From positions 25,544,001-25,608,000 of the forward strand of contig NC_047021.1 of assembly GCF_902652985.1 (NCBI RefSeq): 64,000 nt of DNA. Reading direction: 5' to 3'. Shown piece after piece: positions 11,390-47,700 of this stretch (the first letter of the stretch is position 1; every line of letters begins with the position of its first letter). The translations under genes and the position numbers were made by a program. This DNA comes from Pecten maximus (taxonomy: Eukaryota). The notes under the pieces are model-generated. The model searched no databases. It saw only the letters and a program-made list of their open reading frames with translations, and was not told where the DNA came from.

Positions 11390-36399
<25,010 letters not shown>

Positions 36400-38228: not shown

Positions 38229-38422
38229 TATTTGTAAGTATTAATGACAATATTATCATCAGAGGATGAAACGTTTACAAACAATACTATTTAATGTGGG
38301 GACTTTTTATCTTTTCTCATATTTACCTTCTCTCAGTAATACAGACTTCCACTGCTGACTTAACCGTTGTTTTTCTACTCAGGAACATTTTGTAAGGTAT
38401 TTAGATAGGTATTTAGATAGAA

Positions 38423-38790
38423 AATCTAGTTAGAAATAAATGTTAGACAAAGTTTTACCCTGGCATTTCACAGGTCATTGTCTGTCATCCCTGAGAATCT
38501 AGTTAGACACAAATGTTTAACAAAATTTTACCCTGGCATATCAACAGGTTATGTCTTCCCTGAGAATCTAGTTAGACACAAATGTTTAACAAAATTTTAC
38601 CCTGGCATATCTACATGTCATTGTCTGTCATCCCTGATAATCTAGTTAGACATACATGTTAGACAAAGTTTTACCCTGGCATATCAACAGGTTATGTCTT
38701 CCCTGAAAATCTAGTTAAACATGAATGTTAAACAAAGTTTTACCCTGGCATATCTACAAGTCATTGTCTGTCATTCCTGAAAACTAGTTC
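38423..38790. repeat. ~70/73-bp tandem repeat, about 5 units
   Basis: Units start AATCTAGTTAGA..TTTTACCCTGGCAT; endings alternate between GTCATTGTCTGTCATCCCTG and GGTTATGTCTTCCCTG. Confidence 0.85.
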
Positions 38791-39832: not shown

Positions 39833-40770
39833 TCATATGCAATCTGAGAAGCGGTATATTCCGGAGTAGTTCTCATCAACATAAGTCTATATTGCTCTTT
39901 CAAATAGAGAAGTAAATATAGAACATGTGGCCCATTTGGACGGTGCTCATTGAAAAAAGAAAGAAAAAAGGATGATAGGGTGAGAAGGAGAGTAAGTAGT
40001 TTATCAAAAGATCACAAGTGAACAAAACCCTTTGCCTTCGAGTAAGTCTAGGCGCACAAACTCATAAACTAATCTAGAAATGATTTATCATTTGAGAGAA
40101 ACATGTGTTATTACCAATCTAAGATCAGCCTGGAAATGCATTCACTCGGTATATTCAGAAAAAAAACATGCCTGTTTTAACAGGCGTCTGCTTCTGGTTA
40201 GTATTGATAGAAGACAAAATATTAGCCCTACTCCTACTATATCAACAAGGTGTAACACTAAAAAACGTATATTTTAGAGTGGTATGAAGGGGGCGATCTG
40301 ATTGGTTGACAACTCTATAAGCAATATTAACTATAATTGTCGACCTATCAAGTCTACTCCGTTCCACAGTCGATACATCGTAGATCTTCTAGTGTGACAT
40401 AGTATGAGTAGGGTATACTATTTTCTTTCCGTCAATACTAACCAGAAGCATACGCCTGTGATATAACGTAGGAATATGTCCTGAACGAAGCGAACAGAAG
40501 TTGGTATCAATGTGTCTCAACGGCCTGGAAAAATCTAATAGACAAAACATTGTCATATTGAATACGTGTTTTATTACAATGGTTTATTACACCAAAAGAT
40601 CACTTACCGTAATGGGATTTACTTATTTTGTAGATATGATAATGCGAAGTTAAAGTCACATACATGTATATTAGAATTAACAGAATAGGAAATTTACAGT
40701 AAGTCTATCAGTTCTGCATAAACACATTAATCTTTTTAGATAATTGATCACACTCATTTACTGGATTAAG

Positions 40771-41439
40771 TTACTTCTTTTTGTAACCATATCCGTTACA
40801 TAATGGACATCGTCTGAAGTCCCGAACCAAACCAGTTCCTTCGCATTTGCCGCACTTTGTATGCTCTTCAGGTGGCTCAAACGATTTAACGATGGCACCA
40901 GCTCCCAAGCCCGCCGCAGATCCACCAATAATCCCTCCAACAATGCCCCCGATAGGTCCACCAACGACAGTCCCAACGATGGCCCCTGAGACCCCTCCCC
41001 AAAGGCCGCCAGCACTTGTCGCTACTCCAACATTGTCGCCCTTTAGGGCGTAATATGGACCAGTGAAATGAGCAATGACAACATCGCCTATCTTTGGCAC
41101 AGACTGGCCGAGCAACGCTTTGGCAATGGATTCAATGGCCTTGCTCGCTGCATAATCAGCTGCTTTATCCTTCAATTTGTCTAAGGTTTTATTTGGAGGG
41201 AATTGTCCTCTGGCAAGTTCGATGGCTTTCACCAGGTAGATAGGTTCGCCCTGAATGGCAAGTTTGATAACTTCGTCTGTCTTACTGTCGTACAAAATTA
41301 CACTGCGGATTTTTTGACCAGCTATTTTAGTGAATTCCTCCTCGGCGCTCCTCCTAGTAGTAAATGTGTGAGCTGGTAAGATCTTTGGCGATTCATCCTC
41401 CTCCTTAGCATAGGCTGCTATTAAGTAACGTCTTGCCAT
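40771..41439 (-). CDS. uncharacterised glycine-zipper protein with C-terminal DnaJ-type (CxxCxGxG)x2 zinc finger, paralogue A (222 aa)
   Basis: Uninterrupted ORF with raised GC; ATG at 41439 lies 20 nt after a tttcatttcAG acceptor (41460-41461); collinear homology with 43934-44599. Confidence 0.85.
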   Translation of the reverse strand: MARRYLIAAYAKEEDESPKILPAHTFTTRRSAEEEFTKIAGQKIRSVILYDSKTDEVIKLAIQGEPIYLVKAIELARGQFPPNKTLDKLKDKAADYAASKAIESIAKALLGQSVPKIGDVVIAHFTGPYYALKGDNVGVATSAGGLWGGVSGAIVGTVVGGPIGGIVGGIIGGSAAGLGAGAIVKSFEPPEEHTKCGKCEGTGLVRDFRRCPLCNGYGYKKK

Positions 41440-42059
41440 TTTATCTTGGCTTTTAATGCCTGAAATGAAATTAAAAATCAAAACAGATAATCTAAAGATC
41501 GAATGCACGCCATATATGTGTCAATTTTAGATATGACGTAAACGTTATTAAATGTAGCATATCTTATACTTGTTCATAAAAAAAGATTATTACATTAAGT
41601 AGAAGCTGGCTTACAATGTTAATCACATATTATCGAAATGATATTACTGCTTTTCATGTATTAATCTGCTGGATTTTTAACACTAGAGTATTATCATAGA
41701 AGACACAAAACATGAATGAATATTCAATATAACAATGTATTTTAAACATTACATTCCATTTAGTTTATTAACTTTTCTCAAAGATTTTGACTATAAGTTA
41801 CGTCCATGGTTTACTTTAGCTACCTTGTATGTATCACGATATCTCGAAAAGTACTTTAATATGTATAATATAAAATTATTCAGTACAGCCTAGCAAATTA
41901 ATTTAGAAACAACAAATACTATCTAACCCAAGTCAACCCATTTCATTTACAAAACAGAAGTATATCTTCTAAACGAGAAACTATGGTAAGGTAATTCTAA
42001 ATATATTCATTAAATGACTGAAATAATACAAATATCTAAAAGCGTCAAAAGAAAATAAT

Positions 42060-42490
42060 TCCATAACCTGCAAAATGGAACTTTGGATTGTAACTTACAT
42101 ATAATACAGGAAAATCTCTGGGGTGCAAGTGGTAGTTCTAGAAACGTATAGTTATGTATAGAGAGAAAAGATATTTAATGGGAATATTCATGTCGTAAAC
42201 AAGAACAAACAACAAGGACTTGCCTAGACGTTCAGAGTCATTTAACAGAGTGATAAACTAAATTTAATTGGTTATATGATTTTAAACTGAGAGCCTATCA
42301 TGTTTTATTTTATATAGCCTTTTTATTGTATTAGGTACACACATACATATATAAATATGTTACTCTTTCTCTATGAATATTTTTACTGAAATATTGGTGA
42401 TGTTCAGAAATATCCCGAAACAAATATTCTTCAATAGGAAGATTAGATATATCGACTAATTACGAACTTGAGCATCTCAAGGTAAGTAAT
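42060..42490. promoter_or_regulatory. putative bidirectional promoter and non-coding first exons of the paralogue pair
   Basis: Outward-facing donor candidates (- CAG|GTTATG ~42067; + AAG|GTAAGT 42482) and back-to-back TATA-like boxes (- 42308-42316; + 42348-42357). The AT-rich background weakens the motif evidence. Confidence 0.4.
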
Positions 42491-43107
42491 GAAGGTATTT
42501 AGGATAGATATATGTAGACCAAGCTGAAAGTAAGTATGAACAGGAGTTAATATAAAATTATAGCTTGTTTTCAAATCCTACTGATTGATGTAATTGTGTT
42601 GTGATGTAGTGTGTAAGTGTATTTGAATGAAATACATTTTGTTTAAACTAAAACATTTATGTTATACCGAATTTAAGTAAATTGCATTGAAATGCACCTT
42701 TTTGGTTTTTCTGGTGTCATGCAACAGTGTCTTACATACACTCAATAATGTGAGGAAGCATCATCATTTAGGACATGTATGAACAGCACGGGCTAAACAA
42801 TTACATCAAGTATAATCAATCTAATCAAACTCACTAATAGCTAACACTGACAGGACATGTTCACGCTACAGATTACAACAAATTTGATGGTACAAAAAAT
42901 GAATTATCGATAAGCACAAAATCTATTATACAAAATAAAGACACCTCTTTACATGAATATAATATTGCTCCTTGTTGGGATCATTTAAACTTGAGGATAT
43001 AGTAAGTTACATTTACAACAAAACTGAAGGCACGCAAGCATCTGGAATTGTGAGTATACAAAATAGTGAAATCGTATGAGAGGTCGGTGGTATTGAAATA
43101 CTTGAGC

Positions 43108-43494
43108 TTTTTCGGCATAGCCGTATAATTTTCTTTTGACCCCGGATATGACGCGACAGGTGGCGTTCCTGGTCAAGATGAAGTATGTGATTGGTCAATG
43201 TAGCAGTAAATGCAAAATGCTGATATGGAGTAAAAAACGAAACAAAGTTAAGATTGAATGCAAGATTAATACGTAGATGTATCAATGTATGTGTTTTCAA
43301 ATAACACATTAATAAAATTATATTCCTGATTCAAATGCAGTCTTATTATTACCAAAAATGATTCAAACTGACATAATTTTGATATCCGTGCTAAAACGCA
43401 TTAGTTCGTTAAATTATTTCACCAGCAGTTTTACATTATAACCAACAGCATTGAAACTATGCCGTTTATCTTTTTTAAAGATATTTCTTGTTTA
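43108..43494 (+). repeat. dispersed repeat, copy 2 (unclassified)
   Basis: Highly similar to 21048-21393. Confidence 0.85.
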
Positions 43495-43933
43495 GCGTTG
43501 TTTTGGTAAAAATGAGGCTGATTTATTTTGTTCTATCCTTTTTCATTGAACGAAAAAGAATATTATAGAAAAAAAATTGCGCTCGAAAGCACTAATATTT
43601 TCATCGTATCCGTTTCCAGCCAGAGTACACATATTCTAATTGAAGATTAATATCGGTAGCGAATTTTAAGCTGTAGACAATATACGTATGGCAAGTTTTA
43701 ATTGCAAATAGTGTACATAGAGAAACGACCGCCTGTTCAAGCTTCGCGACTGGCATGCTGAGAGTCGCAGGTTTGATCCCTGGTGGAGGCATACTACTCG
43801 CTTTCCTGTTACATTTTCATACTGATTTATCTTAATGATTATTTAACGAAATGCGATAATCGAGTGTCTCTTCCTCTAACTTCAATATATTTCGCTATTT
43901 TTCAGGTGTATTTTGCATATAAGTCCATCAAAT

Positions 43934-44599
43934 ATGTCGAAAGAAGCGAAGAAAGGCAGATATATAGTAACATACTTTAAAACTGCTGAGCATCAAAAAC
44001 CAGCTGTACTCTGTGTTACCGACGACTTGGAGAAAGCCGAGGGAACGTTTAAAGAAGAGAGAGAAAGAAAGATATACAGCACAGTTTTATACGACAAACA
44101 GAATGACAGGGTAATGAAATTTGCCATTGAAGGGGAACCAAAGTCTCTTTCTCTTGCAATAGAATTGGCGAGGAATGGAAACGAATTAAACGTCAATGCC
44201 TCAAAAACGAAAAAAGAAGGAAATGTGGTCGAAGCTGTCGAACAGATTGAAAGTGTAGCATCCGCATTAATGGGAAATTCGGTACCTGGGATCGGCCATG
44301 TTGTCGAAGCCCACTTTCTGGGGCCTTATTACGCAATGCAGGGCGACGGAGTAAAAGCGGCCCAGGCATGTGCTGGGCTCTGGGGAGGAATGACTGGAAC
44401 CGTCCTAGGACTTCTTGCAGGACCCGCAGGTGCAGTGGCCGGGGGAATCGCCGGTGCGACCCTTGCATCAGAAGCAACATGTCGCCTATTCAAGGCATAT
44501 AATCATCCAGACAAATGCAAGAAGTGTAAAGGAACAGGGTTGGTCGAGGACTACCGCACGTGCAAGCAATGTGATGGTTTCGGGTACATCAAAAAGTAG
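43934..44599 (+). CDS. uncharacterised glycine-zipper protein with C-terminal DnaJ-type (CxxCxGxG)x2 zinc finger, paralogue B (221 aa)
   Basis: Uninterrupted ORF; ATG at 43934 follows a tatttttcAG acceptor (43904-43905); shares LYD, AIxGEP, AIELAR, SVPxIGxVVxAHFxGPYYA, GLWGG and both CxxCxG motifs with paralogue A. Confidence 0.85.
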   Translation: MSKEAKKGRYIVTYFKTAEHQKPAVLCVTDDLEKAEGTFKEERERKIYSTVLYDKQNDRVMKFAIEGEPKSLSLAIELARNGNELNVNASKTKKEGNVVEAVEQIESVASALMGNSVPGIGHVVEAHFLGPYYAMQGDGVKAAQACAGLWGGMTGTVLGLLAGPAGAVAGGIAGATLASEATCRLFKAYNHPDKCKKCKGTGLVEDYRTCKQCDGFGYIKK

Positions 44600-44753: not shown

Positions 44754-44864
44754 CACGGGGCATGTCTAGTCTTATATAAAAAATGGCCAGAAATACCTAT
44801 ATTATAGACTTATATATATGTATTTCTGGCTATTTGTTAATATAAGACTAGACATGCCCCTGTG
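44754..44864. repeat. ~110-bp imperfect hairpin
   Basis: GGGGCATGTCTAGTCTTATAT..GCCAGAAATAC pairs with GTATTTCTGGC..ATATAAGACTAGACATGCCCC. Confidence 0.85.
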
Positions 44865-45289
44865 ATAAAGCCATGAATTTTCCATCAATAGGCAAGCGAC
44901 ACCTTGTCAGGCGTTTTAACACCTATGAGAAAAATGCGGAGATTCTGGTATTTATATCACCCAAGTTTAAGGTTTTAACTAGAGAGTGAGAGACTGTTTT
45001 TGTAAACAAACACTTACACGTCACCAATTAGTTTTTCTTTTATCTTATGAAACTGCATTAAAAATTCTTCTGAGAGCTGGCGTCTTTATTTCATTTTTAG
45101 CAAAAGGCCCAATGGAAGTTGCATTAGAAGTTAGTGAGCAGTGCAGGTATATTGCTCATCTGCTTCTAATGCAACTTTTAAGTTGATCTAGCTAGGTCAT
45201 TTATGGATTTGCTAAGCTGATTACCACTTAATTCAAGTATAATAGTAGGCTAGATTATTTTAAGTTTTGTAGCTCTTCATTCAAACATA

Positions 45290-46306: not shown

Positions 46307-47700
46307 ATGGACATTGGGTGGAGGATGTATGGGGTTGTGTAGTGAACATTGGGTGGAGGATTTGTGGGGTTGTGTAGTGGACATTGGGTGGAGGATGTGT
46401 GGGGTTGTGAAGTGAACATTGGGTGGAGGATGTGTGAGGTTGTGAAGTGGACATTTGGTGGAGGATGTGTGGGGTTGTGAAGTGGACATTGGGTGGAGGA
46501 TGTGTGGGGTTGTGAAGTGAACATTGGGTGGAGGATGTGTGAGGTTGTGAAGTGGACATTTGGTGGAGGATGTGTGGGGTTGTGTAGTGAACATTGGGTG
46601 GAGGATGTGTGGGGTTGTGAAGTGGACATTGGGTGGAGGATGTGTGGGGTTGTGAAGTGGACATTGGGTGGAGGATGTGTGGGGTTGTGTAGTGAACATT
46701 GGGTGGAGGATGTGTGGGGTTGTGTAGTGGACATTGGGTGGAGGATGTATGAGGTTGTGTAGTGAACATTGGGTGGAGGATTTGTGGGTTGGGAAGTGAA
46801 CATTGGGTGGAGGATTGGTGGGGTTGTGTAGTGGACATTGGGTGGAGGATGTGTGGGGTTGTGTAGTGGACATTGGGTGGAGGATGTGTGAGGTTGTGAA
46901 GTGAACATTGGGTGGAGGATGTGTGGGGTTGTGTAGTGAACATTGGGTGGAGGATTTGTGGGGTTGTGTAGTGAACATTGGGTGGAGGATTTGTGGGGTT
47001 GTGTAGTAAACATTGGGTGGAGGATGTGTGGGGTTGTGAAGTGGACATTGGGTGGAGGATGTGTGGGGTTGTGAAGTGGACATTGGGTGGAGGATGTGTG
47101 GGGTTGTGTAGTGAACATTGGGTGGAGGATGTGTGGGGTTGTGTAGTGGACATTGGGTGGAGGATGTGTGGGGTTGTGTAGTGGACATTGGGTGGAGGAT
47201 GTGTGAGGTTGTGAAGTGAACATTGGGTGGAGGATGTGTGGGGTTGTGTAGTGAACATTGGGTGGAGGATTTGTGGGGTTGTGTAGTGAACATTGGGTGG
47301 AGGATTTGTGGGGTTGTGTAGTAAACATTGGGTGGAGGATGTGTGGGGTTGTGAAGTGGACATTGGGTGGAGGATGTGTGGGGTTGTGAAGTGAACATTG
47401 GGTGGAGGATGTGTGAGGTTGTGAAGTGGACATTGGGTGGAGGATTTGTGGGGTTGTGAAGTGAACATTGGGTGGAGGATATGTGAGGTTGTGAAGTGAA
47501 CATTGGGTGGAGGATTTGTGGGGTTGTGTAGTGAACATTGGGTGGAGGATTTGTGGGGTTGTGTAGTGAACATTGGGTGGAGGATTTGTGGGGTTGTGTA
47601 GTGAACATTGGGTGGAGGATTTGTGGGGTTGTGAAGTGAACATTGGGTGGAGGATATGTGAGGTTGTGAAGTGAACATTGGGTGGAGGATTTGTGGGGTT
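46307..47700. repeat. 35-bp G-rich minisatellite, about 40 copies
   Basis: Unit GTGAACATTGGGTGGAGGATGTGTGGGGTTGTGTA with a few variant positions. Confidence 0.97.

Follow-up and report, generated by a model that had tools for sequence, protein, structure and literature searches.

A head-to-head gene pair of the scallop Pecten maximus encodes an unclassified family with a predicted glycine-zipper hairpin and a DnaJ-type zinc knuckle

Two genes of the scallop Pecten maximus, here called A and B, stand head to head at positions 40,771 to 44,599 of a stretch of 64,000 nucleotides (NCBI RefSeq assembly GCF_902652985.1, contig NC_047021.1, positions 25,544,001 to 25,608,000 of the forward strand; the whole stretch is referred to as the window, and its first letter is position 1). 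They encode proteins of 222 and 221 amino acids belonging to a family that has neither a curated name nor a Pfam model, and both genes are intact and under purifying selection. Members of the family join a small N-terminal α/β domain to a motif-bearing glycine-zipper hairpin and to what reads in sequence as half of a DnaJ-type zinc module, a combination of domains that is new although the motif classes themselves are well known. The favoured reading, held at about an even chance, is that A and B are intracellular membrane proteins anchored by the hairpin, and that they are redundant paralogues. A first-pass annotation of the same DNA, made from its letters alone, has largely stood as regards the unclassified family, the zipper hairpin, the knuckle and the action of selection, but its proposal of a two-component system has not.

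Protein architecture and the predicted hairpin

The six-frame list of open reading frames (ORFs) presents A and B as two intact, divergent frames whose ATGs are separated by 2,494 bp, as the annotation had noted in rounder figures (~2.5 kb). Its estimate of about 40% identity between collinear sequences is likewise borne out by BLASTP, which aligns 219 residues at 42% identity with 6 gap positions and an expectation value (E) of 2e-51. A and B are the only copies of the family found in a search of the 918-Mb Pecten assembly, and the module formed by the AHxxGPYYAxKGD motif and the zipper is confined to the same two genes in this genome. Neither protein has a match over threshold in Pfam, NCBIfam, PADLOC or the PDB, in keeping with the unclassified status first given to the pair; an Atlas search returned no feature matches for them, and no literature on the family was found via orthologue gene identifiers or motif-based searches.

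The layout of the proteins (Table 1; residue numbers are those of A) was taken from alignments of 10 and of 28 sequences, the latter also serving as input for an AlphaFold2 model. Both proteins follow the family order of N-terminal domain, AHxxGPYYAxKGD motif, zipper and two CxxCxGxG repeats within about 215-240 amino acids, and some 20 homologues align from end to end; the motifs quoted at first sight (GEP...AIELAR, SVPxIG...AHFxGPYYAxxGD, the GxxxG run and the two CxxCxGxG repeats) were all recovered. The N-terminal domain is modelled as a strand-helix-strand-strand-helix fold with a predicted local distance difference test score (pLDDT) of 86-92, bears a conserved GEP...A(I/V)ExAR element, and has a ratio of the proportions of nonsynonymous and synonymous differences (pN/pS) of 0.30-0.35. 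It is without a recognisable relative: Foldseek found nothing in the PDB at E <=0.001, the best value for this domain being at least 0.25, and a wide structural search reached only Z 5.4, with T4 Dmd. Orphan phage ORFs of 60-75 amino acids in BFVD give template modelling (TM) scores by target of 0.6-0.77 at sub-significant E values of at least 0.008, and models of LPD11 give TM scores by query of about 0.6, which for 80 residues are of little meaning. The helical linker that follows is the least constrained part of the protein (pN/pS 0.36-0.71).

The central region is best described as a generic glycine zipper placed after a family-specific motif. The motif, P-G-x-G...A-H-x-x-G-P-Y-Y-A-x-K-G-D, contains six positions that are invariant in all ten aligned sequences (H124, P128, Y129, Y130, A131 and G134), and leads into a hydrophobic stretch of about 50 residues (52 counted) that in A is 35% glycine and holds only one positively and one negatively charged residue; a GGP or AGP turn lies at its centre. 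GxxxG motifs start at 14 positions in A (residues 134-177) and at 6 in B (residues 148-170). The transmembrane glycine zipper, in the definition of Kim et al. (2005) as relayed in PMC4470416, is a (G,A,S)xxxGxxxG or GxxxGxxx(G,S,T) pattern in a hydrophobic helix; such patterns start at 15 positions in A, 13 of them inside the hydrophobic stretch, and at 10 in B, with 9 inside. The Kyte-Doolittle maximum over 19 residues is 1.89 for A and 1.64 for B, whose hairpin is 4 residues shorter across the aligned stretch and has fewer GxxxG motifs and two additional cysteines. Together with the knuckle, the motif-plus-zipper region (pN/pS 0.18-0.30) is the most constrained part of A and B.

The knuckle of A comprises two CxxCxGxG repeats with cysteines 196, 199, 211 and 214, is modelled at pLDDT 84-91 and has a pN/pS of 0.16-0.17, the range for the knuckle as a whole being 0.16-0.25. 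Two such repeats about 8 residues apart are the arrangement behind one zinc centre of DnaJ and the only one of anti-TRAP. Of all Pfam families, the DnaJ cysteine-rich domain PF00684 gives the top match (17.8 bits for A and 19.1 for B against a cut-off of 32.7); it is weakly matched by 23 of 28 family members (best E 8.4e-5), with none of the 28 over threshold. Matches well under the cut-off also link B to DnaJ (TIGR02349, E 5e-4) and to anti-TRAP (E 0.004) in NCBIfam, while the anti-TRAP family PF15777 gives 13 bits for A (cut-off 32) and NF058604 gives 13.4 for A and 17.1 for B (cut-off 65). When a family profile was compared with all PDB sequences, the matches were limited to two zinc fingers, those of Ydj1 (E 0.009) and DnaJ (E 0.16). 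The likeness of A and B to DnaJ/Ydj1 and anti-TRAP, which provide the best PDB and Pfam signals, thus lies in the arrangement of two CxxCxGxG repeats; unlike A and B, which join the knuckle to a predicted hairpin, DnaJ has four repeats, a J domain, a G/F region and a C-terminal client-binding domain. Only two repeats are present in A and B in place of the four of the two-zinc DnaJ module, and a Pfam search found no J domain (PF00226) in either protein even at E up to 10, as the annotation had supposed.

In the arrangement that we infer for membrane insertion, topology, zinc binding, oligomerisation and cellular role, each protein would be placed at an intracellular membrane, on its cytosolic face, with an uncharged glycine-zipper helix-turn-helix hairpin of about 50 residues dipping into or crossing the bilayer; the zipper would probably drive self-association as well. 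Because the proline turn between the two zipper helices would bring the chain back to the side of the membrane from which it came, the N-terminal α/β domain and the C-terminal knuckle are expected to share one, reducing side, where the four knuckle cysteines would hold one zinc ion. An intracellular location is suggested by the lack of a secretion signal, no hydrophobic N-terminal signal being found by sequence in A or B (again as first annotated), and by the fit of a zinc-thiolate knuckle to the reducing cytosol. The four knuckle cysteines are, moreover, the sole cysteines of A, which fits a reducing compartment.

The weak sequence and structure neighbours of the hydrophobic stretch, namely C19orf12, DUF456, SlyB, TraT, Tim17/22/23 and NDUFA11, are all membrane hairpins. 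In C19orf12, paired glycine-zipper helices have been described, with the flanking soluble parts proposed to lie on the same face of the membrane (PMC4470416). The C19orf12/Nazo proteins (PF20721), found at the endoplasmic reticulum, mitochondria and lipid droplets, resemble A and B in their small size, in lacking a signal peptide and in having a central pair of zipper helices with a turn of the G-G-P type. In Pfam, the zipper meets C19orf12, DUF456 and RTX families at E 0.03-0.2; PF20721 scores 11.8 bits for A and 13.8 for B (cut-off 30), and these matches fall exactly on the zipper, within profile positions 44-86 of 163. A and B cover only about 33-42 of those 163 positions, and C19orf12 is without the knuckle, the AHxxGPYYAxKGD motif and the N-terminal α/β domain. 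A candidate C19orf12 gene of Pecten itself, the best PF20721 match in the genome (L013:1171-1695, on another contig), was rejected as a spurious low-complexity frame antisense to an 840-amino-acid, Thr/Pro-rich, mucin-like ORF. Neither protein matched PF13488, PF13441 or the related glycine-zipper families of Pfam at E up to 10; a single family member matched PF13441 (E 0.036). For residues ~118-189, the closest neighbours in structure and sequence are SlyB, TraT and Tim17/22/23-NDUFA11, found in the wide structural search at Z 5-6.6 on a low-confidence model; A and B differ from them in having neither a lipobox nor the four-helix Tim17 fold, and the likeness probably reflects convergence among glycine-zipper hairpins.

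Several observations count against a membrane anchor. The linker and the hairpin are modelled as helical at pLDDT <50. Insertion of the hairpin is a prediction; glycine-rich hydrophobic stretches may also aggregate or lie at a surface, and neither A nor B revealed a localisation signal. Low ratios of nonsynonymous to synonymous substitution rates (dN/dS) cannot tell an anchor from an effector, and the occurrence of the module under alternative heads, together with gene gain and loss among scallops, would also fit an effector. Traces of transcription are also slight: when four read runs carrying a Pecten species label were compared with the region (their RNA status is guessed, none being recorded as RNA), contigs of 173 nt (40762-40934) and 169 nt (41170-41338) were found over A, and none over B.

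These uncertainties bear on a different view of the hairpin, in which A and B would be soluble, cytosolic zinc-finger holdases or adaptors of a DnaJ-like kind and the glycine stretch a flexible or self-associating linker. Such proteins would account for the DnaJ-type knuckle being the most consistent sequence signal, for the low confidence of the modelled middle region, and for the hydropathy of B, whose maximum is merely at the classical threshold. A run of about 50 nearly uncharged, strictly conserved residues rich in V, I, A and G is nevertheless unusual for a soluble linker, all neighbours of the region are membrane hairpins, and the knuckle provides a single zinc centre without J domain or client-binding domain, all of which makes a soluble function improbable.

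Selection, duplication and loss among scallops

Orthologues of A are found in Ylistrum (71% identity) and Mizuhopecten (67%; an intact ORF that is unannotated there), and those of B in Argopecten (70%) and Mizuhopecten (69%). Calculated by the method of Nei and Gojobori, dN/dS against these orthologues ranges from 0.18 to 0.22 for A and from 0.09 to 0.20 for B, low values that span three or four genera for both genes and lie far from the value of about 1 that the first-pass annotation had named as refuting its reading. Between A and B themselves, synonymous sites are saturated and no value is computable. The exact A protein is present in NCBI and UniRef, and the exact B protein is absent from the public collection. 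Public protein sets hold only A in Pecten, only B in Mizuhopecten and only the first B copy in Argopecten; gene builds thus seem to miss one member of each pair.

The selective constraint bears on the proposition that the two ORFs are non-functional, be they frames open by chance, retrocopies in decay or a piece of some mobile element. The short read-run contigs over A and their lack over B, the absence of B from public protein sets, and the single coding exon of each gene might all be taken in this sense. The frames are more than chance ORFs, since the sole other ORFs of at least 150 amino acids in the window, where guanine plus cytosine (GC) amounts to 33%, all sit within a 35-bp minisatellite and since orthologues of both genes show dN/dS of 0.09-0.22. 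The conserved synteny, the presence of two copies only, the conserved acceptor site in the 5' untranslated region (5'UTR) and homologues across bivalve orders also speak against a lack of function, and a lack of function is close to refuted.

In Pecten, the gene order is PRDM(+) - A(-) - B(+) - Ank(-), and the same order of a PRDM-type gene, A, B and an ankyrin gene is found in Mizuhopecten, with a spacer of ~8 kb, and in Ylistrum, with one of ~3 kb. Although the arrangement persists in Ylistrum, B there (L005:6351-6982, minus strand) has decayed to a pseudogene: three in-frame stops interrupt it, part of the zipper is deleted, and the frame shifts ahead of the knuckle, while the adjoining A is intact. 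Argopecten presents the converse. Its B is duplicated in tandem (L007:10001-10642 and 16856-17491, plus strand; dS 0.215 and dN/dS 0.375 between the copies), and a search of the interval from PRDM to the first B, at E up to 10, recovered no remnant of A. Pinctada and Ruditapes have one copy each within the 20 kb examined. In a maximum-likelihood tree, the pectinid A sequences form a clade with support of 99/99 and the B sequences one of 100/100 that includes one further sequence, the deeper branches being unresolved. Most simply, a single gene was probably ancestral, and the A/B pair would have arisen from it by duplication in inverted orientation, either in the ancestor of scallops or earlier; reciprocal loss would then have followed in other scallops.

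Reciprocal loss among scallops, together with the single copies elsewhere, suggests that either paralogue suffices, and A and B would accordingly behave as partly redundant paralogues rather than as obligate partners. The losses amount to a natural experiment that constrains any model of the family, one copy being enough. They are hard to reconcile with two obligatory subunits, and so argue against the system envisaged in the first-pass annotation, in which A and B would be co-regulated and form an obligate, hetero-oligomeric two-component membrane system comparable to CdzC/CdzD. In its favour are the head-to-head arrangement retained in three scallop genera, the selection acting on both copies in Pecten and Mizuhopecten, and the capacity of glycine zippers to mediate contacts between helices (PMC4470416; PMC5380434). 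The Ylistrum pseudogene beside an intact A, the lack of A at the syntenic site in Argopecten where B is doubled, and the single copies of Pinctada and Ruditapes in the 20 kb examined all run counter to it, as does the spacer, in which blastn found no conserved non-coding block between Pecten and either Mizuhopecten or Ylistrum. Co-folding of residues 84-190 of A with residues 84-190 of B returned a score of 0.00, which was counted neither for nor against the pairing. On this evidence, an obligate pair is highly improbable.

CdzC and CdzD of Caulobacter are encoded by two adjacent, related genes, contain glycine-zipper repeats and act as a bacteriocin (PMC5380434). The likeness to A and B extends to the zipper repeats and to the adjacency of two related genes. 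CdzC and CdzD, however, are small, secreted bacterial proteins that act jointly on other cells, whereas A and B are animal proteins of an intracellular type, without a secretion signal and with extra folded domains, and comparison of scallop genomes indicates that either of them can be lost. Retention of both partners together, as in the CdzC/CdzD type, is not seen in Ylistrum, at the syntenic site of Argopecten or, within the 20 kb examined, in Pinctada or Ruditapes. Nor is there a sign of the secretion signal, dedicated exporter or nearby immunity gene of such systems, as the N-termini of A and B are not hydrophobic and their neighbours are PRDM and ankyrin genes.

Wider relatives and the motif-plus-zipper module

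Searched exhaustively with a profile, 1.84 billion representatives yielded 80 proteins at E <=0.001, about 12 of them full length. The named full-length members come exclusively from bivalves (Ylistrum, Pinctada, Ruditapes, Argopecten and Mizuhopecten), and the others from contigs of Logan, ENA or Tara that are eukaryotic in character. When prokaryotic representative genomes and IMG/VR were scanned for the pattern, no full-length relative emerged, only motif-only matches; as candidates for a prokaryotic or viral source, the scans gave just a zinc-knuckle fragment from a phage and a glycine-rich stretch from an actinomycete. A CxxCxGxG knuckle on a phage contig from IMG/VR (L015:1940-2071) is 44% identical to A residues 178-220, and small phage families match the knuckle at E 8e-6, for example phrog_3931, of 59 amino acids.

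Beyond the full-length family, the motif-plus-zipper module recurs in a 107-amino-acid protein of Dreissena, in a foraminiferan transcript and in several uncharacterised families. The best sampled of these, P0025 (211 amino acids; e.g., L010:8001-8636), carries the module at its N-terminus, followed by a C-terminal domain modelled as an eight-stranded, calycin-type barrel. The profile comparison of the module with P0025 by hhalign gives a probability of 99.5% and E 7e-23 over about 80 columns, and shows that the module of A and B is homologous to that of P0025 beyond any shared composition. A third architecture, represented by P0039 and P0040 (272 and 362 amino acids), places a beta-rich domain of ~170 amino acids, without a Pfam match, after the module. 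Since the module is common to at least one other architecture, it is definable as a new domain and could be added to family databases as such.

The reuse of the module under different heads, above all under a small barrel, favours the main rival of the membrane anchor, namely that A and B are regulated, membrane-disrupting effectors of immunity or cell death. The module would oligomerise and permeabilise a membrane, each paralogue acting as a homo-oligomer, and the N-terminal domain and knuckle would restrain it or sense a trigger. The model for such a protein is Cap15, an effector of the cyclic oligonucleotide-based antiphage signalling system (CBASS) with two transmembrane helices and a ligand-binding barrel, which oligomerises and damages the membrane (PMC10419184). 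The layout of P0025, whose N-terminus is homologous to the module, resembles that of Cap15, and Cap15 is among the structural matches of the barrel, with Z 7.9. The zipper also weakly matches RTX pore-forming regions and phage tape-measure membrane segments, and the lineage-restricted, patchy distribution of the family, with duplication and loss among scallops, counts in favour of effectors too. The Cap15 match is unspecific, however, being tied with many unrelated barrels below a best Z of 10.1, and it concerns the sister family P0025 and not A and B. Cap15 pairs two membrane helices with a small head that regulates them, a plan that A and B may share; they end in a knuckle, carry an α/β domain, show no sequence similarity to Cap15 and returned nothing relevant from PADLOC. 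Just two copies are present in the genome, under steady purifying selection and with no diversifying pressure seen. An effector function of A and B is, overall, unlikely.

A broader proposition is that the module, of about 80 residues, is a mobile membrane-permeabilising unit of marine animals and protists that has been set on interchangeable sensor heads: the α/β domain and knuckle in A and B, a calycin-type barrel in P0025, and a further domain in P0039 and P0040. It is quite unlikely, but if it were true, A and B would belong to a class of eukaryotic effectors not yet described, laid out like Cap15, that disrupt membranes when gated by a ligand or signal; in bivalves, they could be a downstream arm of the expanded innate-immune signalling.

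Whichever reading applies, selection maintains this family across bivalve orders even though it has no name, Pfam model, solved relative or paper that could be found. As organelle-membrane anchors, its members would be a lineage-specific counterpart to proteins of the C19orf12 type; as gated membrane disrupters, they would constitute a new class of animal effectors.

Gene structure, spacer and surrounding sequence

The sequence 5' of each ATG suggests an intron within the 5'UTR and one coding exon per gene (Table 1). Each of 11 homologous loci, drawn from the scallops, Pinctada, Ruditapes, a metagenome contig and the P0025 sister family, has a pyrimidine tract with an AG acceptor 5-50 nt 5' of its ATG. 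The conservation of the acceptor in every locus points to an old eukaryotic gene and not to contamination. A structure of a 5'UTR intron and a single coding exon is therefore the one we infer for both genes, and it is possible that the two share one bidirectional promoter.

Table 1. Features of the A/B locus and its PRDM-type neighbour, in window positions
Feature	Position	Strand	Basis
Gene A coding exon, 222 amino acids + stop	40771..41439	-	ORF list, first ATG
A residues 1-82: family-specific N-terminal α/β domain	41194..41439	-	AlphaFold2 and alignment
A residues 83-112: variable helical linker	41104..41193	-	Low-confidence helix prediction
A residues 113-186: motif and predicted glycine-zipper helical hairpin, central G-G-P turn	40882..41103	-	Alignment, hydropathy
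A residues 187-222: single DnaJ-type zinc knuckle, basic tail	40774..40881	-	PF00684 sub-threshold, alignment
Gene B coding exon, 221 amino acids + stop	43934..44599	+	ORF list, first ATG
B residues 116-185: same motif and predicted glycine-zipper hairpin	44279..44488	+	BLASTP alignment
B residues 186-221: zinc knuckle, Cys 195, 198, 210, 213	44489..44596	+	PF00684 sub-threshold
Spacer between ATGs, 2.5 kb	41440..43933	.	Expected 5'UTR exons and promoter(s)
Polypyrimidine tract and AG acceptor 20 nt 5' of A ATG	41460..41480	-	Sequence
Polypyrimidine tract and AG acceptor 28 nt 5' of B ATG	43893..43905	+	Sequence
GTAAGT donor	42093-42098	-	Sequence
GTAAGT donor	42483-42488	+	Sequence
PRDM-type gene exons (PR/SET and C2H2 zinc fingers)	~30500-35100	+	Match PRDM neighbour in Argopecten, Ylistrum

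Within the spacer, one of the read runs described above (X4) provides a contig of 160 nt at 42107-42266. The spacer also contains, at 43108-43493, a dispersed high-copy repeat. In each of the four runs, contig depths there add up to thousands or tens of thousands, consistent differences are numerous, and loose ends mark the two borders; the repeat probably resembles a short interspersed nuclear element (SINE) or a miniature inverted-repeat transposable element (MITE).

The GC content of the window is 30-38% except in two short stretches. The G-rich minisatellite, at 46311-47700, consists of about 40 copies of its 35-bp unit at 94% match with a GC skew of 0.68, and yields three spurious minus-strand ORFs of 457-493 amino acids. 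A tandem repeat with a period of 69 or 143 bp (2.6-5 copies) occupies 38420-38789, and immediately 3' of B, at 44763-44900, lies a repeated element with an internal inverted repeat and a depth of 58-534 in all runs.

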